This document shows, in pieces, positions 9,111 to 37,988 of a DNA stretch of 64,000 nucleotides. The stretch lies in IMG/VR virus record IMGVR_UViG_3300036781_000418, positions 1 through 64,000 of that record, one strand, 5' to 3'. The position numbers and the translations under genes are program-made. Below the pieces are notes generated by a model. The model was not told the DNA's origin, made no database searches, and saw only the letters and a list, made by a program, of their open reading frames with translations. Each line of letters opens with the position of its first letter. The stretch's first letter is position 1.

Positions 9111-10268
9111 ATGTTCCCAGAGATCAAGACGTTCGCCGACCTGAAGCCAAAGCTGAACGAGAAGTTCAACATCCATGAGCGCGACAAGGGCTACGCCACC
9201 GTGGTCTACGGCATCCAAGACGACGAGGTGTTCGACGGTCCTGACGAGGCCTACCTGCGTGAGTGCCGTGGCATCATGTTCGACGGTGAGCGCGACGACT
9301 CCAAGCTGATCTGCCGTCCACTCCACAAGTTCTTCAACGTGGGCGAGCGCTCCGACACCCTGCCGTCGGCGATCGACTGGTCGCGTGTCAACAAGGTTGG
9401 CGTCAAGCGTGACGGCTCCATGATCACGCCGTTCATCGACCCGGCAACGTACGAACTGCGCTGCAAGACGAAGAAGTCCTCGGCGACGAAGGAGGCGGCG
9501 GCCGCCCTCAACCTGCTGCTCAACAACCAGCGCCAACACCAGTGGGTGGTGAACCTTATCGAGGTCGGCTACACGCCGATCTTCGAAATCACGTCCCCGC
9601 GCTTTCCAATCGTCGTGTTGTACGAACAGGAGGAGCTCACGCTGCTTCAAGTCCGCCACATGGAGCAGGGCGTCTATCTGACCGACGCAGAGATCGCCGC
9701 TCTCAACCCACCGTTCCCAGTCGTGCCCGACGTTGCAAGCCAGTTCCTTGACAGGGACGGTCACGTGAGCTGGCCGCTGATCCACAAGGCCTGCCAGGAA
9801 ACGCATGGCATGGAGGGCTGGATCATCCAGACGTCACGTGACATGTACAAGGCGAAGACGCAGTGGTACATGGACCTGCACCACTCGGTGACGTTCATCC
9901 GCTGGCGTGACGTCGCACGCTGCGTGCTGTCCAACAGTGCCGACGACCTGAAGGCGAACTTCCGGATGACGGGTCGGGACGTTGTTCCGATCGAGCTGGT
10001 TCAGGCCTACTTGAAGGAGGAGCTCGAGTACGTTCAAGGCAAGGTCAACTTCGAGGTCCAGTTCGCTCGTGACGCGGGTCTGTCCTTCAAGGACATGGCG
10101 GGTTCCCTGCGATCCCACCCGTACTTCAACCTGATTATGGCCACATCCCGCGGCCAAAACGTTGACTACAATGAATGGTACCAACGGCGTCGTCTCAGCG
10201 ACTGGTCCCTTGAAGTGATCACAACTGAGGTGAAGTTTATCGAACCCCTAGCACGCGAACGTCCATGA
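9111..10268 (+). CDS. rnlA: RNA ligase 1 (T4 RnlA-like)
   Basis: RECRGIMFD, CRPLHKFFN, motif I KRDGS, FE, EGW, KxKTQWY. Confidence 0.9.
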   Translation: MFPEIKTFADLKPKLNEKFNIHERDKGYATVVYGIQDDEVFDGPDEAYLRECRGIMFDGERDDSKLICRPLHKFFNVGERSDTLPSAIDWSRVNKVGVKRDGSMITPFIDPATYELRCKTKKSSATKEAAAALNLLLNNQRQHQWVVNLIEVGYTPIFEITSPRFPIVVLYEQEELTLLQVRHMEQGVYLTDAEIAALNPPFPVVPDVASQFLDRDGHVSWPLIHKACQETHGMEGWIIQTSRDMYKAKTQWYMDLHHSVTFIRWRDVARCVLSNSADDLKANFRMTGRDVVPIELVQAYLKEELEYVQGKVNFEVQFARDAGLSFKDMAGSLRSHPYFNLIMATSRGQNVDYNEWYQRRRLSDWSLEVITTEVKFIEPLARERP

Positions 10269-10675
10269 ACGTCAAGCTTCGGCACTACGCAGGTCCAAAG
10301 GACCTGATCACCGCGGTCGACCTGGCCATTGAACACGAGCTCTTCGTGCACGGCTGGTACTTCTCCAGGTACTATTACATCGTCCGACAGTGTGCCGAAG
10401 ACCTGTTCAGGTGGGACGCCGAGTACTGGCAGCGCGGGTACGAGATTGCCCTGGCCTTCGCCGACGGAAAACCAGTCGCGATCGCCGCCATGGAGCGAGC
10501 CAGGATCATGGCCTTCTGTAAGGAGAGCCATCGACGACAGGGGTTCGCCACGGCCTGCGTTCAGCGCCTCATGCCGATCGCCAGCCAATTTCCTGACCTG
10601 AACGCCGGCCTCGGGATTGACGGTTCCGAGCTGTTCTGGACGTCGAACGGGATCGTGATCAACACCGAATACTAG
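10265..10675 (+). CDS. GNAT-family acetyltransferase
   Basis: Acetyl-CoA-binding motif A HRRQGFAT; ATGA overlap with the ligase. Confidence 0.7.
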   Translation: MNVKLRHYAGPKDLITAVDLAIEHELFVHGWYFSRYYYIVRQCAEDLFRWDAEYWQRGYEIALAFADGKPVAIAAMERARIMAFCKESHRRQGFATACVQRLMPIASQFPDLNAGLGIDGSELFWTSNGIVINTEY

Positions 10676-10772
10676 GCGACACGAGAGGTCGCCGGTTGCA
10701 CTCGACCGGTTCGGTGCAGAGCTTCACAGACGAGGGACCCGAGTGGTCCCTCGGTTCGTCTCGTGTCGCCTA
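10673..10772. repeat. 100-bp element bounded by 14-bp perfect inverted repeats, with internal hairpins (probable bidirectional terminator)
   Basis: TAGGCGACACGAGA (10673-10686) and TCTCGTGTCGCCTA (10759-10772); internal GAGGGACC..GGTCCCTC. Confidence 0.85.
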
Positions 10773-10988
10773 AACGACCTTCGCCTCAATCATCGACTGC
10801 ACACGGTCGATCGCCCGTTGAATCGGCTTCCGGTAGGCTTCAACCCGCTTTGACGCGTCAAACTTCGCGTACAGCTTCGACCTGACGTCGAGCAGCTGAT
10901 CGAAGGACATGTCGCCCCATGTTTCAGGGTGTGGGATTGAGACGCGCTCTTCGTCGACGAACATTGGCTTGTTTTCTTCGGTTGTCAT
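10770..10988 (-). CDS. hypothetical protein
   Basis: AGGAGG RBS and TAAATA at 11014-11019 on the minus strand. Confidence 0.75.
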   Translation of the reverse strand: MTTEENKPMFVDEERVSIPHPETWGDMSFDQLLDVRSKLYAKFDASKRVEAYRKPIQRAIDRVQSMIEAKVV

Positions 10989-11013: not shown

Positions 11014-11032
11014 TATTTAGAGGGGCTAAATA
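11014..11032. promoter_or_regulatory. back-to-back divergent late promoters
   Basis: TATTTA at 11014-11019 (minus) and TAAATA at 11027-11032 (plus). Confidence 0.7.
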
Positions 11033-11059
11033 CGCTTGAAGTCAACGGAACCTGGACAC

Positions 11060-11443
11060 ATGAAGCTCCTACAAGACCTGATCGGCGAAGGCCGTCACCC
11101 AATCACCCCAGCCGCACCAATGCTGGTTAACCTGACTCTTCAAGAGATCGTTTCGGGCGGTGGTATCTCCAACCCGTACCAGCTCTTCGTCCTCGGCAAG
11201 ATGGCCCGCTTCTTCAAGGACGGCCTGAAGTCGGCTGACCTAGAGCTTGAGACGCCGGTGAACTACGGATCCGGTGAGACTGACTCAGCCCTGAAGGTCG
11301 AGATGCAGAAGCTCACGAACGAGGAGTGCGTCCACTTGGCCGCCTACCTGCTGGACTGCATCGACGCTGGTGAAGCCGCCCTCTACTGCGAAGGCATGGA
11401 CACCGTGGCGTGGATCAACTTTGTCCTCCAACGTCAGAAGTAA
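11060..11443 (+). CDS. putative internal head protein
   Basis: ATG start gives MKLLQDLIGE, a capsid-targeting-like leader; late promoter upstream. Confidence 0.6.
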   Translation: MKLLQDLIGEGRHPITPAAPMLVNLTLQEIVSGGGISNPYQLFVLGKMARFFKDGLKSADLELETPVNYGSGETDSALKVEMQKLTNEECVHLAAYLLDCIDAGEAALYCEGMDTVAWINFVLQRQK

Positions 11444-11857
11444 ATGAGGGTCGTTCACCTCTTTGAGGAGAACCTCGACCGTGAAGACGCACTGCATGCA
11501 ATGCAGCTCATGGCTAAATTCCTCACTAAGAAGCTTGGTGAGGAATACAAGGTATTTGACCGCGACCAAGGTAGTGGCAAGCCTCTTCCAGTCATGCTCA
11601 TTGAGGTAAAACCTGCGGTAAATTACATGGCCGCCAGTACGGATAGCAGCGCTGGTCGCTCCGCCCACATTTCACGTGGGGCTGATAAATGGGAAGTTGT
11701 CATCTATGAGGGGCGTAGGCGATCACAGACTTTGCTACACAAATTTAAGGTCGACACGGACAAAGAGGCGGTAGACACAGCCGTTGAATACGTGAAGAAG
11801 TTCGATGTTAATAAGCCGTACGTTGGCTCATTTAGAGCTGAAGATGCCGATGAGTGA
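11444..11857 (+). CDS. putative internal head protein, paralog family A
   Basis: MRVVHLFEE leader; weak similarity to downstream paralogs (..AVEYVKKF). Confidence 0.6.
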   Translation: MRVVHLFEENLDREDALHAMQLMAKFLTKKLGEEYKVFDRDQGSGKPLPVMLIEVKPAVNYMAASTDSSAGRSAHISRGADKWEVVIYEGRRRSQTLLHKFKVDTDKEAVDTAVEYVKKFDVNKPYVGSFRAEDADE

Positions 11858-11875
11858 TCTTAGGTATAACAAACT

Positions 11876-12247
11876 ATGAAACTTAATCACCTCTTTGAAG
11901 ATGATCTTGACGATCAGTTGGACGGGGCCGAAGAAGACTTCGCCATCTTGGCGCGCTCAGCCACTAAGACGCTGGGCCACAAGTTCAACTTCATCAAGGG
12001 CTATGGCTCAGTCACGCTTGAGATGAACGCCGACGACCTGTCGTTCTTTGAAGCTGACGGCATTGAAATCCCGTACCTTATCTTTACACCTTTCACGCCT
12101 AAGGGTGAACACGATGATCAATATCAGTACAAGGTGTCCTTGTACAACGGTGTTCAGATGGACGGTACCTTGTACGCGAAGCTTGGTGCCGCGTACACCG
12201 CGTTCATTGAACTTGCCAAGACCCAAATCGCAAAGAAGAAGCCATGA
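11876..12247 (+). CDS. putative internal head protein, paralog family A
   Basis: MKLNHLFED leader; LDGAEEDF..IEIPYL domain. Confidence 0.65.
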   Translation: MKLNHLFEDDLDDQLDGAEEDFAILARSATKTLGHKFNFIKGYGSVTLEMNADDLSFFEADGIEIPYLIFTPFTPKGEHDDQYQYKVSLYNGVQMDGTLYAKLGAAYTAFIELAKTQIAKKKP

Positions 12248-12669
12248 AGCTCAACAGCATTCTTGAACATTTTGACGATGAAGATGACGGGGACGACGGT
12301 GCTGGCGACGCCGCCATCCTTAAGGCGGAGTTTGAAGAAGCCGTTGACGACCTCGAACTGCTGGCTAAGATTGAATCCAAGCGATTTGACCTAGATCTGT
12401 TCGTGCGTGTGAACAATGGAGTGGGTGTAGCTACGATTGAATGCGAAAGCGCCCTTGATCAAGGCCTCAGAGCCAAGTACGACATCGAGTTGCCGAAGTT
12501 GGAGTTTAGTCAAACCAACCGTATCCTGAAGAATGAACCGTACACCATCACCATGTGGCACAAGGCACCTCGGCGACTTTCAACGTCACGCTACCGTGAC
12601 CTCAAGACCGCGCACGCTGAGTACGTCAAGCTCATAAAATATCAGCTGGAGAAGAGGACTGAGCCATGA
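12244..12669 (+). CDS. putative internal head protein, paralog family A
   Basis: MKLNSILE leader; DDLELLAK..KRF..IELP domain. Confidence 0.65.
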   Translation: MKLNSILEHFDDEDDGDDGAGDAAILKAEFEEAVDDLELLAKIESKRFDLDLFVRVNNGVGVATIECESALDQGLRAKYDIELPKLEFSQTNRILKNEPYTITMWHKAPRRLSTSRYRDLKTAHAEYVKLIKYQLEKRTEP

Positions 12670-13658
12670 AGCTTGACCACCTTCTCGAAGACTCCAACAA
12701 GGAAACTTTGGACGGGGTTAAAGAAGACTTTGAACTCTTCGCGCTCGCGGACACCAAGCGCTTTGGGCTTGGGTTTGACGTGCGCGAAACGGCCACCTCC
12801 GTGATACTGGGTCTGACCTACGAGATCTCAGATAAGATTGAGGCGGACAACAGAAACAGAGTTGAACTGCCGTATCTAATGTTCAGCAATGACAGTGAAT
12901 TCCCGGAACCGTTTAGAGTGGCTTCGTGGAACCATCAGAGTAAGATTGTCCCGCCACGATACTTCAAGAGCGCCAGTCAAGCACATGCCGCAATGGTCTT
13001 TATCATGCGTCAACAGTTGAAGGTGGCGGGGATTATTAAAGAAGAGTCGTCAGGTGAGCTCACGTCCGCCGGTACGTGGAAGCACGCGCTGCGCGTGTTG
13101 GGCCAACACGATGAGCTCAACGTCATTGACTGCGTGACAAGTGCAACCGTCACAATTGCGCTTGCTGCGTTCTTCAATGAACACATGCGTGCGGACATTA
13201 AGGACGCTCATTCTGGCAACTATGAGGAGCTCTTTGACAAGGTCAATAAGGACCGCAAGCTGCTTGACTTGTTCGTCGAACACATGGGCAACAAGCTGGT
13301 CAAGCTGCAGCCGCTGATCTCCGTCAAAGTTCGTAAGGCGTTTGACATGTGCATTGCGAAGTACGTTGATTTGGCGGACGTGAAGGAGGACCTTGAACTG
13401 CTTGGCGCCGCCCTTGCAAAGATCTACGACACTGACTACAAAATCGTAGTTAAAGATGGACACGTGGATCTCCGTGTTGACGTTGAGACGGATAAAGACG
13501 GTGTCGAACCTTACATCACCTACAGCCTGAACACGTTCCGACTTGAGTTCATTACGGACCTTAGACGAACTCAAGTGCTGCCGCGCTACTTCCTCACCGC
13601 GGGTCAGCTGTCAAAGGTGGCCGTCGAATATGCCAAGCGCTTTAAAGACGCTAAATAA
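12666..13658 (+). CDS. putative internal head protein, paralog family A (two domain copies)
   Basis: MKLDHLLED leader; VKEDFEL..PRYF and VKEDLEL..PRYF repeats. Confidence 0.65.
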   Translation: MKLDHLLEDSNKETLDGVKEDFELFALADTKRFGLGFDVRETATSVILGLTYEISDKIEADNRNRVELPYLMFSNDSEFPEPFRVASWNHQSKIVPPRYFKSASQAHAAMVFIMRQQLKVAGIIKEESSGELTSAGTWKHALRVLGQHDELNVIDCVTSATVTIALAAFFNEHMRADIKDAHSGNYEELFDKVNKDRKLLDLFVEHMGNKLVKLQPLISVKVRKAFDMCIAKYVDLADVKEDLELLGAALAKIYDTDYKIVVKDGHVDLRVDVETDKDGVEPYITYSLNTFRLEFITDLRRTQVLPRYFLTAGQLSKVAVEYAKRFKDAK

Positions 13659-13862
13659 GCCATGATTATCTCGAACGCCTTGGACTAGCTCCCTGATCGA
13701 ATTCAAGGCACGGCAATGAGCACACTCCTACCTTAAGGTGATTCGCATCTTGACGATCACAGCTATCTACCAACTGCTCCTCTTGCTTCAACTGACCCCA
13801 TCGGAGGTGCGTTGAAGCACACTGATGGCCTCACCACTCGTTCCCTCACCGTAGGAGGTACC
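13652..13862 (+). promoter_or_regulatory. late promoter plus ~200-nt structured leader of phoH
   Basis: TAAATA at 13652-13657; three hairpins; CTCCTAC (13725-13731) complementary to the RBS region GTAGGAG (13851-13857). Confidence 0.5.
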
Positions 13863-14615
13863 ATGGGACGTAGAACGCCAAAGTTGGAAATCATTTCTTC
13901 AGATGATGACTTCGCTCTGCCACGCAAGGCAGCCAAGCAGAAGTACCCTCAGCCAGAGAAGACGGCAAGTCAAATCTGGTTCAAGCACAAGCTCACGCCG
14001 CGAACCGGCAACCAAGAATACTACCTGCAGAACCTACGCGAGAATCAACTCACCATGTGTGGTGGTCCAGCTGGTACTGGCAAGACGATGTTCGTCACAC
14101 GAGTCGCCCTCGAGATGTTGCAAGCCAACGCCGTGGGAAAGATCGTCGTGACGAAGCCGATCATTGAAGCGGGTGATGAAGAGCTGGGGTTCCTACCAGG
14201 TGATCAGACCGACAAGATCATGCCGCACTTCCAATCGATCCTCGACCAGTTCGAAGAGCACGTTGGACCGACCATCCTCAAGCGACTGCTTGACAGCGGC
14301 AAGATCACGTTCCTCCCAACGGCGTTTGCACGCGGCCGTGACATCAAGCACGCCTTCATCTTGATCGATGAAGCACAGAACCTCTCGAAGAAGGGCATCA
14401 AGACCATGATGACTCGCATCTCCGAAGGCTCGGTGATGGCGCTGAACGGTGACTCAGACCAGTGCGACTTGAAGGACCCACGCATGAGCGGGTTCGAATG
14501 GGCGATTGAGCGCCTCACTGGCCGTGACGGCAACATCGGTGTGGTGCGCATGACTGAGGATGACATCCAACGCCACCCACTCGTGGCGGTCATCTGCAAG
14601 GCGCTGCGCGATTAA
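13863..14615 (+). CDS. phoH: PhoH-like ATPase
   Basis: GPAGTGKT, LGFLPG, ARGR, IDEAQN, NGDSDQCD, IQRHPLV motifs; AGGAGG RBS before ATG 13863. Confidence 0.95.
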   Translation: MGRRTPKLEIISSDDDFALPRKAAKQKYPQPEKTASQIWFKHKLTPRTGNQEYYLQNLRENQLTMCGGPAGTGKTMFVTRVALEMLQANAVGKIVVTKPIIEAGDEELGFLPGDQTDKIMPHFQSILDQFEEHVGPTILKRLLDSGKITFLPTAFARGRDIKHAFILIDEAQNLSKKGIKTMMTRISEGSVMALNGDSDQCDLKDPRMSGFEWAIERLTGRDGNIGVVRMTEDDIQRHPLVAVICKALRD

Positions 14616-14658: not shown

Positions 14659-14958
14659 TCATTCCGCGTTACGGTACTTGAAGAACAGCGTCAGCCATGT
14701 TATCTGCGTTAGCATGTAGATGAAGTTGATGACGTTGGCCAAGTAGAACGACGCGCTTGGGTAGACCACGAAGGTCGACCAGACGTTCCACCCAAGGAAC
14801 AGGCACATGTTCTTCCAGTCAAACCCCTTCACCTCTTTGTCCTTTATCAGCTTGCGTAGGTTCTCGATACCGGCACAGACGAAGATGGTGTCAAAGATCG
14901 CGGTGATCAGGTCAGTTCGACTAGGATGCAGCATGTGCTGCACCCACTCGGCGATCAT
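14659..14958 (-). CDS. small 3-TM membrane protein, PQ-loop/SemiSWEET-like
   Basis: Three hydrophobic segments; KLIKDKEVKG loop; GGAGG RBS; overlaps the Thg1 stop codon. Confidence 0.55.
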   Translation of the reverse strand: MIAEWVQHMLHPSRTDLITAIFDTIFVCAGIENLRKLIKDKEVKGFDWKNMCLFLGWNVWSTFVVYPSASFYLANVINFIYMLTQITWLTLFFKYRNAE

Positions 14959-15812
14959 GGTGCCTCCACGATCGGACCACCAAACAGCAAGGTGGCCACT
15001 GGATCTTCCTGCTTTGACAGCCAAATGTCGCGCAGCACGACTTCACTGCGTTCAATCGGCCCAGTGGGTCGGTGTTCAGGCTTCAGCTTCGCGACGATCA
15101 ACGGGTCCAACTCCTTGAACACCTTCTCACGACGGGCAAACGTACCGCGCTTGAAGCTCCAGTCGTAGTCGTTGAAGTTTACGCCAGCGTCGTTGAACAT
15201 CTTCTCTTGACGTTCCTTGGAGTTCATACCAAGCACCGCCTTGTGGCCGCAGTGAAACACGGCCGCTGATGAGATGGCGTTCTTCACCGCGTCTTGCTGA
15301 CGCCAGAGGACTGCGTTGTAGGCCTCAACGAGGGTCGGCACGACGAAGGCGCGGGCGTCGAAGCAGGCTTCAGCCTTTGACTTCTCTTGAAGGTGCTTGT
15401 CGATCAGCTTGGCGAAGCGGGCGGCGGCCCATGACGGCAGCTGGGACTCAAGCTTCTGGAAGCGGCCGGCGAAGGGGTAGTCACCACTGGAGTCAGGGGT
15501 CTCGTACCAGACGAGCGTGATCTCGTCGGACTGTACATAGCCAACCGTCGCTTGGTAGCGTTCGACCAACCCAACCATCAGCTCCTGCATGCAGGTGGTG
15601 AAGCGGTAGTCGAAGGGCTTGGCGAGTCCCTTGGTGAAGGTGCTGAAGTTGTCGCCGTCAAGACGGACGATCAGTGGTTGGCCTTTGTAGGCGCGGCGGG
15701 CGGTGGACGGCTCTTCATAGAGCTTCATCCGGTCCCCAAGTGACATGGAAGGTTTCATGGTCTCGAACTCCGAGTTAATGGTTGGTCTGGCCTCATCGGC
15801 CAGTGCGTTCAT
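14955..15812 (-). CDS. thg1: tRNA(His) guanylyltransferase Thg1-like 3'-5' polymerase
   Basis: GDRMK.YE, IVRLDG..F..FT, QSDEI, GRFQKL, FDAR, WRQQD..KN motifs; exact start uncertain. Confidence 0.92.
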   Translation of the reverse strand: MNALADEARPTINSEFETMKPSMSLGDRMKLYEEPSTARRAYKGQPLIVRLDGDNFSTFTKGLAKPFDYRFTTCMQELMVGLVERYQATVGYVQSDEITLVWYETPDSSGDYPFAGRFQKLESQLPSWAAARFAKLIDKHLQEKSKAEACFDARAFVVPTLVEAYNAVLWRQQDAVKNAISSAAVFHCGHKAVLGMNSKERQEKMFNDAGVNFNDYDWSFKRGTFARREKVFKELDPLIVAKLKPEHRPTGPIERSEVVLRDIWLSKQEDPVATLLFGGPIVEAP

Positions 15813-35070: not shown

Positions 35071-35306
35071 AGCTGCTGAAAGCTGAGACCATCTTCGACA
35101 ACGATACGTTTGAACCGCGCCACCGACTGACGGTGGAAGTTAGTCAGACGTTCATCGACGATGTGCAGTTGTACGAAGGACTGCGGACCGACATAGCCCA
35201 GGTGATTGGACTTCGGTTTATGGAGCTAATCGATCAGCTGATAACGGCCAACGCTGCGCTTTCTAAACTGAACCCTTCGGTGCAGCTTGGCGAAGCGCAG
35301 CCTTAG
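35067..35306 (+). CDS. hypothetical protein
   Basis: GTGA overlap. Confidence 0.5.
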   Translation: MKLLKAETIFDNDTFEPRHRLTVEVSQTFIDDVQLYEGLRTDIAQVIGLRFMELIDQLITANAALSKLNPSVQLGEAQP

Positions 35307-35793
35307 TCGCCCTAGCCTTCATCTCAGGCACCTTGTCGTCGAGGAACTTAGCGACCTCGACGGCGTCGATGATCCGAACCTTAGTTGGCTTGGAGACGCC
35401 GTTAGCGTAGAAGATGTTCCAACCACCCTGCCTAAACTCCATCTCAACGCTGACCCTTACGGCCTCCGCTTTTGGTACGTCCCAGAACGCGAAGATGTGG
35501 TGTGACGCATAGCTGGTCTTAAGGGCCTGGCCATTGTCCACGGTCAAGCCAAGCTTTTCCAGCTTCTTCATGAACAGGTGCTGGTCAACGTCCAGGTCTT
35601 CTGGCTCATGGGCGCCGGTAACTCGGCTTACGACGCCGTCAATCTGTGCGGCTGATAGAATGTCCGACAAGATATCGGCCAACTTGTCCTGTACTTGCTT
35701 AGGATCGTCCACCTGGGCGAAGGCGTCGTGTAGGGCCTTAAGCTTGTTAGTTTTGCTGTCGACTGAGGCCTCGAAAAGGTGCTGGATATGCAT
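35263..35793 (-). CDS. putative internal head protein
   Basis: MHIQHLFEA leader; TAAATA at 35817-35822 on minus. Confidence 0.65.
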   Translation of the reverse strand: MHIQHLFEASVDSKTNKLKALHDAFAQVDDPKQVQDKLADILSDILSAAQIDGVVSRVTGAHEPEDLDVDQHLFMKKLEKLGLTVDNGQALKTSYASHHIFAFWDVPKAEAVRVSVEMEFRQGGWNIFYANGVSKPTKVRIIDAVEVAKFLDDKVPEMKARATKAALRQAAPKGSV

Positions 35794-36816: not shown

Positions 36817-37449
36817 ATGCGGCGCATCCTACTTGCGTTGACGGTCGTTCTGTCCTCGTCAGCTTTCCTAATCAACTACGCCTTCTCGGAGATGCCTCAG
36901 GCCAAGGGCACGGTCGTCATCGGCGAGAAGCCCACCTACATCAAAGGCAACCAAGCGGTCACCCTCCTGCCGACCGACCTCAACATGAGCCAGGCCCAGC
37001 TCCTCAGCAAGGCCTATGAGATCGCGAAGGCCGACGGCCACAAGGATCCAGAGCTCGTGCAGGGCATTATCCTTCAGGAGTCTGAGGCGGGTCGGGCCAC
37101 GGCCTACCGCGTTGCAGGCTCGAAGTCGGAGCCGTACTACGGCGTCGGTCAAGTGAAGCTGGACGCGACGCGTGACGTCATGTCGGCCTACCCAGCCATG
37201 TGGACGAAGTACCGCTTCCAAACGAAGACGGACGATGAGCTCAAGGCCTACTTGATCTTGAACAACGTCTTCAACATGGAGGTGACGTCCAAGTACCTCC
37301 GCATCTTGGAAGTTCGCTACGGCCTCTCTGGTCGCGACCTGCTGAACGCCTACCAGAAGGGGCCAGGTGGCTACAAGGAAGTTGACCCTGATGAGTACCA
37401 CTACGCCCGTGGGGTTGAGGACAAGCTGGCAAGGATGAAGCGTCGATGA
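36817..37449 (+). CDS. lytic transglycosylase (SLT-like) with N-terminal signal/anchor
   Basis: QES catalytic motif, GVGQV, AYQKG, Y..V; hydrophobic N-terminus. Confidence 0.8.
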   Translation: MRRILLALTVVLSSSAFLINYAFSEMPQAKGTVVIGEKPTYIKGNQAVTLLPTDLNMSQAQLLSKAYEIAKADGHKDPELVQGIILQESEAGRATAYRVAGSKSEPYYGVGQVKLDATRDVMSAYPAMWTKYRFQTKTDDELKAYLILNNVFNMEVTSKYLRILEVRYGLSGRDLLNAYQKGPGGYKEVDPDEYHYARGVEDKLARMKRR

Positions 37450-37988
37450 TGAAGAATATCGTGCTACCGCAGATCAAACGCGTCGTGCCATCCACCGTGG
37501 TGATGACGAACGTTGGTGTGCAACCAATGTCGGCACCAAGTGGGATACTACCAATGCTTAGGTACAATTTCACTCCCAACGTTGTCACTGTTGACATTGC
37601 GCGACCAACTATCATGTTGATCACGCATGACCAGTATATGGAGTTAAGATGTAAGAATAGCGTCGTTGACACTTGCGTAGCTCGCTCATGGCCAGTTGAC
37701 GCAATTATGGCATGGCTCCAGTCAAACATCGATCCAGAAGGCTCAATCATCATCCATGTCAATCAGCTTAGCTTGATTGTCTCATCTGGTATTTGGTCTG
37801 GTATACTAAAAGGGCGGGCTTACTTGTATAGCCTAGGGCAAGATAAAGGATTGTCCTTTCACTTTAACGGCATGATCGCTTTGGTTGGGTTAGATGAACT
37901 TACGCCTGTTAAACAGCGGGCCGCATTCTCGCGACTTCGGTTGATCGCGCCCAAGACGCAAATCATCCCCGGCAAGTACAAGCTCTAA
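37446..37988 (+). CDS. hypothetical protein with N-terminal major-capsid (Gol-like) segment
   Basis: IKRVVP..VGVQPMSAPSG..LR matches the T4 gp23 RRAIP..GVQPMNSPTG..LR segment; remainder unrelated and more AT-rich. Confidence 0.65.
   Translation: MMKNIVLPQIKRVVPSTVVMTNVGVQPMSAPSGILPMLRYNFTPNVVTVDIARPTIMLITHDQYMELRCKNSVVDTCVARSWPVDAIMAWLQSNIDPEGSIIIHVNQLSLIVSSGIWSGILKGRAYLYSLGQDKGLSFHFNGMIALVGLDELTPVKQRAAFSRLRLIAPKTQIIPGKYKL

Follow-up and report, generated by a model that had tools for sequence, protein, structure and literature searches.

Do five consecutive small genes of an uncultured jumbo phage encode proteins that are loaded into the phage head and delivered into the host with the DNA? 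The genes, here called open reading frames (ORFs) A–E, lie in the IMG/VR virus record IMGVR_UViG_3300036781_000418, and each opens with a short leader peptide resembling the capsid-targeting sequence (CTS) of the T4 internal proteins. The window analysed is bases 1–64000 of this record; coordinates prefixed G000 are those on the whole 342,591-bp record, which has direct terminal repeats and 57% GC and represents a T4-like jumbo virus. All five ORFs listed by an earlier note on this DNA are present on the + strand with the leaders it gave, and the likeness of these leaders to the T4 CTS stands. The leader is not peculiar to the array, however, but common to some 40 genes of the genome, and we regard the scale and modularity of this tag as more interesting than the array alone. 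The ORFs, operon, leader statistics, paralogy, orphan status, late promoter and protease presence were computed here, and we infer targeting, cleavage, packaging and ejection: the five tagged proteins are probably packaged and injected, because the tag resembles the T4 tag that loads proteins into the head and is later cut off.

The leader heads 34–43 of the roughly 423 genes, or about 10% of the genome's genes, in a gene set built from our own crude calls (423 genes). The strict pattern M-[KR]-[LIVF]-x-x-[LI]-x-E opens 34 of the 423 genes and follows only 3 of 2277 internal methionines (about 0.6 expected by chance); a position-weight matrix at >= 8 bits recovers 41 genes against 0.4 expected, and the back-translated DNA pattern yields 31 matches against one for a reversed control. 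Across 42 proteins the consensus reads M, K (33), L (32), x, Q/H/T, L (37) or I (5), L/F/H, E (37). The leader-trimmed bodies fall into 32 BLAST-unrelated groups, and the leader codons vary synonymously (AAA/AAG, CTT/CTC/CTA/CTG/TTG, GAA/GAG). With shifted spacing included, [LI]-x-E occurs within the first 12 residues of 45 of the 61 proteins with MK[LIVF] starts, most of these 45 being already in the strict-leader set, and of 44 of the 362 others. Leader genes are also concentrated in late operons (31/43, compared with 133/380 other genes; p 4e-6), are poorer in GC (51.5% vs 57.3% for the rest, p 3e-18; 65.5% vs 74.8% at third codon positions), and less often have a match in Ralstonia phage RsoM2USA (5/43 vs 128/380). 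By analogy with the T4 internal-protein loci, such low conservation and low GC would fit an accessory class with fast turnover; the low GC itself may reflect recent origin, relaxed codon selection or foreign origin.

Leader genes often stand in tandem clusters. Their sites include G000 75611-78537, 83025-89910, 95164-98007, 119290-120911, 133888-136277, 208729-215183, 219300, 254768-258358, 269493-275223, 286279 and 335055-337865, and a rarer second leader type (SFKxYLxE-like) is found at G000 90725-92440 and 137269-137601. In the window, a 176-aa protein (35263-35793, - strand) has the leader-type start MHIQHLFEAS; its longest ORF begins further upstream, and the true start is uncertain.

In T4, proteins fused to the CTS (MKTYQEFIAE) enter the head, and the CTS is removed by a single protease cut (PMC8442874). 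A CTS is used by every T4 internal head protein, Alt losing six residues at I-T-E, and the gp21-related proteases all cut after Glu (PMC5694885). The leader of A shares five of its ten residues with the T4 CTS and ends in I-G-E10, and the CTS-like leaders of the other ORFs end in L-F-E8 (B and C), I-L-E8 (D) and L-L-E8 (E). The cleavage motif of T4 gp21 is [LI]-x-Glu. The record encodes a T4-type head module (portal, S77 prohead protease, gp22-like scaffold and gp23 major capsid protein), so that the genome contains both a cognate gp21-family (S77) protease and a gp22-type scaffold: the protease gene (PF03420, E 5e-26) lies at G000 129812-130219, with a 308-aa gp22-like scaffold directly downstream, followed by the gp23 capsid protein (PF07068, E 2e-86). 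Sites of the form [LI]-x-E number 14 in the scaffold. In the capsid protein there are four, every one of them within residues 1-44, and the other 384 residues contain none (0 observed in the mature protein, ~1.6 expected); the last of the four (ILKE/TAGG) lies ~25 residues before the conserved PMIRR motif, which is where T4 gp23 is cut. Among the array proteins the motif occurs at residue 8 only in C and D, at residues 8 and 126 only in E, and at four sites in B. Internal [LI]-x-E sites have an observed/expected ratio of 0.78 in leader proteins and 1.16 in the others (p ~0.001). On balance we favour, with modest confidence, the interpretation of the leader as a T4-style capsid-targeting propeptide that is removed by proteolysis.

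An indirect link to virions is provided by the nearest isolate. By capsid protein this is RsoM2USA (52% identity, 343.8 kb; MG752970.1), followed by Stenotrophomonas phages CM1 and RAS14 and Xanthomonas phages XacN1 and Xoo-sp13, and then by the Rak2-like phages. One leader family here (G000 83975, 119290, 133888 and 134625, the last to 135356) consists of LRR-like homologues of RsoM2USA ORF88-90 (65163-67654 in that genome), and two of these genes come directly after the capsid gene, under a late box. RsoM2USA ORF89 is among the ten ORFs assigned to virion gel bands (PMC8504454), and begins MKTFKQFLSE. In the same phage, 51 of 447 genes start with M[KR][LIVF]x[ED][LIV] (MKLxEI-like), compared with 1 of 2362 internal methionines, and 41 of the 51 form one LRR-like family with ORF88, made up of ~200-aa proteins in long tandem arrays (~175-214 kb); words for paralogy, duplication, N-terminal or gene family do not occur in the RsoM2USA paper (PMC8504454). 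A search of five related metagenomic genomes for homologues of the LRR-like leader family found none. Since homologous LRR-like bodies carry different leaders in the two phages, leader and body evolve separately; homologous bodies with phage-specific leaders are the pattern to be expected if the assembly machinery of each phage reads a tag of its own.

Within the array, sequence comparison indicates that one domain of ~105-110 aa occurs in C, in D and at both ends of E. In an all-vs-all blastp, C matched E(1-125) at 5e-13, D matched E(1-125) at 1e-8, and C matched D at 7e-5; E(226-330) gave 0.004-0.008 against D and E(1-125) and 0.02 against B, and the match of B to C (4e-4) was confined to the N-terminal 46 residues. 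Because leaders inflate blastp scores, the first 10 residues were trimmed from each protein for the repeat test, and the C/D/E paralogy holds with the leaders removed. A leader-trimmed profile hidden Markov model (HMM) of C, D and the N-terminal part of E finds only E 236-278 (domain i-E 1.3e-3), and hhalign of E(226-330) against this profile gives a probability of 90.5% (E 1.4e-6, 90 columns), bearing out the earlier note's claim that the domain occurs twice in the last ORF. Its claim that the last four ORFs share the domain stands for C, D and E and is not borne out for B, for which the leader-trimmed comparisons give an HMM E of 0.32 and an hhalign probability of 1.6%. Leader-independent similarity was found for C, D, E(1-125) and E(~235-324), and not for B or A. 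B may be a very diverged, perhaps older, copy, its membership being unproven, whereas A is not a paralogue of B–E and shares the leader only. At the DNA level, a 51-nt stretch of C and E is still 75% identical, and short duplication remnants are found among B, C and E. A larger domain family of 15 proteins, obtained with an iterative HMM that included the leader, was rejected because its recruitment was driven by the leader: the matches disappeared after trimming of the first 10 residues. In E a leader-like stretch ends at residue 126, at the junction after domain 1, an arrangement suggesting that two tagged genes, formerly separate, were fused into E; L118-KVAGIIKE may be the vestige of the leader of one of them.

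The domain was not recognised by any search. The AlphaFold2 (AF2) model of C, built from a five-sequence alignment (pLDDT 79, pTM 0.75), begins with a long helix (2-33), continues with a sheet of five strands and ends in a C-terminal helix, and Foldseek found nothing for it at E <= 1e-3 in PDB, BFVD or AFDB clusters. Generic helix-sheet-helix matches of C (frataxin, HPF, p32, DUF4304-like), none at E <= 1e-3, were not taken as homology. A word-indexed search of C against 5.8 billion proteins returned C itself only, and an exhaustive profile search of 1.84 billion cluster representatives returned the four query proteins and one false match. P0006 was rejected as a B–E homologue, being a VCBS/cadherin-like repeat protein in which a repeated 'DDADLEFLAANE' segment sums by chance. 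Neither blastn of the locus nor tblastn of E or of A matched any of 50,697 phage records; the ESM Atlas gave no feature match for E, with structural TM scores <= 0.32, and Pfam and PHROG scans of A–E gave nothing meaningful. ORF A is acidic and predicted to be all-helical, with an AF2 model (pLDDT 60) too poor for a fold search.

How variable is the locus? In related metagenomic viruses it comprises rnlA, a few variable small ORFs, phoH and a large structural gene. The orthologue of A is a 128-aa gene beside phoH (33-50% identity in an alignment with four relatives) with the N-terminus MKLHQxIIxE, and B–E, which lie in the variable slot between A and phoH, are absent from the related viruses. 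B–E are thus a lineage-specific insertion between the conserved A and phoH, since the relatives have the A orthologue and phoH without B–E, a setting that strengthens the likeness to the T4 case. The strict leader DNA pattern was not found in 80 loci around rnlA homologues. The AT-rich DNA reported from 11444 onward is likewise confirmed as a dip in GC, to 0.46-0.53 across ~11.45-13.7 kb, the flanks being at 0.55-0.63 and the genome as a whole at 0.57; B–E rank among the lowest 4-9% of genes by GC, and A is normal (58%).

The five genes had been described as five late-promoter ORFs, yet the sequence has a single T4-type late box, upstream of A, and none before B–E. The genome contains the hexamer TAAATA 111 times, and words of equal composition 6-31 times; 74 of the copies precede a gene start by no more than 60 nt, typically by 22-30 nt. 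The box takes the form N-TAAATA-[GC], and also precedes the prohead protease gene and other late operons. Because there is only this one box, and because A and B abut (TAA-ATG), B and C are separated by an 18-nt gap and both C/D and D/E overlap by ATGA, we read the five genes from their sequence as a single translationally coupled late operon, and promoter motif and coupling together predict late expression of all five. A TTG at 11036 was excluded as the start of A because the late box lies 28 nt before the ATG at 11060. Consensus terminator and sigma-70 scans of the locus gave matches at chance level only. A second box, on the opposite strand, serves a divergent small gene (10770-10988). Examples of late boxes in the window are at 234, 1673, 8184, 11019(-), 11027, 19247 and 22457. 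The features of the array are listed in Table 1.

Table 1. Features of the ORF A–E array, in window coordinates.
Feature	Position	Strand	Description
T4-type late promoter box CTAAATAC	11026..11033 (TAAATA 11027-11032)	+	28 nt upstream of the ORF A ATG (11060); sole late box for the five genes
ORF A	11060..11443	+	127 aa; 10-residue leader MKLLQDLIGE ending I-G-E
ORF B	11444..11857	+	137 aa; leader MRVVHLFE(E); start abuts the A stop
ORF C	11876..12247	+	123 aa; leader MKLNHLFE(D), acidic linker, alpha+beta domain
ORF D	12244..12669	+	141 aa; leader MKLNSILE(H), long acidic linker DDEDDGDDGAGD, same domain as C
ORF E	12666..13658	+	330 aa; leader MKLDHLLE(D), domain copy 1 to ~residue 117, middle region, copy 2
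Leader-like stretch in E	13017..13043	+	residues 118-126, L-KVAGIIKE; starts at TTG; matched by the regex as a start candidate
Second domain copy in E	13368..13637	+	~residues 235-324; HMM and hhalign

If the leader works as in T4, its 8 residues in B–E (M-K/R-L/V-x-x-L/I-x-E) or 10 in A would bind the nascent protein to the scaffolding core during prohead assembly. The gp21-type protease would then cut after Glu8 (Glu10 in A), and E would probably also be cut after Glu126 (I-K-E) and may be split in two; the processed protein would remain in the head until infection, when it would exit along with the DNA. The copies in C, in D and at either end of E would be recent, fast-diverging duplicates of an orphan alpha+beta domain. 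A broader reading seems to us a real possibility that falls somewhat short of probable: the 8-residue leader would mark a packaged and ejected proteome of >40 proteins (10% of genes), tuned to each phage's scaffold and protease (MKLxxLxE here, MKLxEI or MKTFKQFLSE in RsoM2USA), and B–E would be acidic injected proteins of a family that arose recently, duplicates rapidly and has no relatives, possibly DNA mimics or other host-directed effectors. Of the earlier picture of an expanded, fast-evolving family of packaged and injected proteins, the duplication in C, D and E thus survives, while B is of unproven membership and A is unrelated. The further suggestion of an anti-defence or host-takeover role finds no support, Foldseek (PDB, BFVD, AFDB) giving no match to a known inhibitor at E <= 1e-3.

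Several observations weigh against packaging and injection. The virus is known from one soil metagenome only: the locus was found in a single sequencing run, the probable source. The strict regex itself demanded [LI]-x-E, so that this feature is partly built into the count of leaders, and some 40 cargo proteins are far more than T4 carries. The products of B–E are acidic (mature pI 4.6-6.0), whereas T4 IPI-III are basic, and in the AF2 model the leader of C is not a free peptide but the first part of a long helix that runs on into the domain. The arguments from motif avoidance and from the capsid protein are individually weak. A complex prediction for the protease with residues 1-30 of C scored 0.00, which is not evidence either way.

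Could the leader instead serve for docking or recognition in a different late process, such as binding to a phage chaperone, delivery to tail, baseplate or fibre, or timed degradation, with B–E never packaged? The predicted position of the leader within an amphipathic helix continuous with the domain would suit such a role, as would the lack of a late-operon assignment for 12 of the 43 leader genes, the unusually large number (~40) of cargo species, the occurrence of several leader clusters among tail/fibre-like late genes, and the failure of the uninformative protease–leader complex prediction to support binding. We nevertheless think this unlikely: Glu8 and the L/I at position 6 match the specificity of the encoded protease family, and [LI]-x-E is concentrated in the scaffold and the capsid propeptide. 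One leader cluster, moreover, lies directly downstream of the capsid gene, and the homologous family includes an assigned virion protein (PMC8504454). A different fate inside the head is conceivable, in which B–E assist the scaffold or core as T4 gp67 and gp68 do: they would enter the prohead by their leader, be degraded or expelled during maturation, and so not be injected. Just behind the leader, residues 9-30 of C, D and E carry a net charge of -5 to -8, and such acidity would be odd for proteins beside DNA; the genes belong to the late class, the genome encodes a T4-type core, and B has four [LI]-x-E sites. Degradation of this kind is nonetheless hard to reconcile with internal [LI]-x-E sites that number none in C and D and one in E, against 14 in the scaffold, or with the avoidance of the motif by leader proteins as a class; essential assembly factors would also be expected to be conserved, yet B–E are absent from all relatives. 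We judge this scaffold role to be quite improbable.

The shared N-terminus might, finally, have no function as a peptide at all: it could have been left behind by duplication or gene conversion, or the signal could lie in the nucleotides and act in translation initiation. Bacterial and phage proteins commonly start with MK, tandem clusters hold many of the leader genes, and the duplication remnants among B, C and E point the same way. Set against these are bodies in 32 BLAST-unrelated groups, leader codons that differ synonymously, and conservation at the amino-acid level (Glu8 in 37/42, L or I at position 6 in 42/42), together with the different leaders that homologous LRR-like bodies carry in RsoM2USA and in this phage, and we see hardly any likelihood in this explanation.

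With capsid targeting as the preferred reading, the closest known parallel is the set of T4 internal proteins IPI/IPII/IPIII together with Alt. In both phages an MK-start leader ends in hydrophobic-x-Glu (MKTYQEFIAE in T4; MKLLQDLIGE and MKLxxLxE here), a gp21-family protease, gp22-like scaffold and gp23 are encoded, the genes are late, and a variable locus houses bodies that are not conserved. Unlike T4, the present phage has an 8-residue leader in B–E instead of 10, ~40 tagged genes instead of a handful, and acidic instead of highly basic mature proteins, T4 internal proteins being highly basic (PMC8442874). The array proteins do not belong with the small, basic, homologous IPI/IPII/IPIII themselves: they have no PHROG or Pfam match, a mature pI of 4.6-6.0, and neither sequence nor fold resemblance to any T4 internal protein. 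The phiKZ-like giants (phiKZ, 201phi2-1, SPN3US) resemble this phage in having many head proteins and diverged paralogues whose N-terminal propeptides remain similar while the bodies diverge, as in SPN3US gp53/gp54 (PMC5694885), and in cleavage after Glu by a gp21-related protease, which is predicted here. They differ in lineage, in their S80 proteases that cut at S/A-x-E (S77 and [LI]-x-E here), and in propeptides that are mostly longer. The RsoM2USA ORF88-90 family is like the present set in carrying an N-terminal tag containing L-x-E, on 51/447 genes, and is homologous to the LRR-like leader proteins here; it is unlike it in its consensus (MKLxEI or MKTFKQFLSE), in that the tag lies largely within one expanded family, and in lacking a B–E homologue.

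If capsid targeting is true, the proteins that an uncultured jumbo phage packages and injects could be read from its sequence, and would form a far larger and more diverse set than in T4. Candidate early-acting effectors would then be the orphan acidic family, the LRR-like proteins and an amidoligase-domain protein, and a tag this short might be of use for filling large capsids with foreign proteins. The concept of an internal-protein locus that is hypervariable would also extend from the T-even phages to the XacN1/RsoM2USA branch, on which the cited papers are silent. If the leader is not a head signal, an N-terminal tag on 10% of genes still needs explaining.

The amidoligase-domain protein is a 394-aa leader protein (MKLDVLFE; Amidoligase_2, PF12224, E 2e-7) encoded at G000 95164-96348 (-). 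As a candidate packaged enzyme it at most hints at enzymes among the tagged proteins.

The array is flanked by genes for a T4 RnlA-type RNA ligase (9111-10268) and, on the other side, a PhoH-like ATPase (13812-14615) and a Thg1-like tRNA-His guanylyltransferase (14955-15812, - strand). No tRNA genes were found in the window; XacN1 has 56 tRNA genes in its terminal repeats. Upstream of the array, a perfect 14-nt inverted repeat (10673-10686 and 10759-10772) encloses more hairpins, and this stretch (10673-10772), lying between the convergent GNAT-like gene (10265-10675) and small minus-strand gene (10770-10988), is probably a bidirectional terminator. Elsewhere in the window, at 37446-37988 (+), a 180-aa protein opens with PQIKRVVPSTV..VGVQPMSAPSG, a stretch similar both to the Pfam Gp23 model, in its N-terminal part, and to the capsid protein's PMIRRIVPGT..VGMQPMSGP. 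The same feature appears in a small ORF at G000 230120-230386, and these Gp23-like small proteins may be capsid-associated or decoys.

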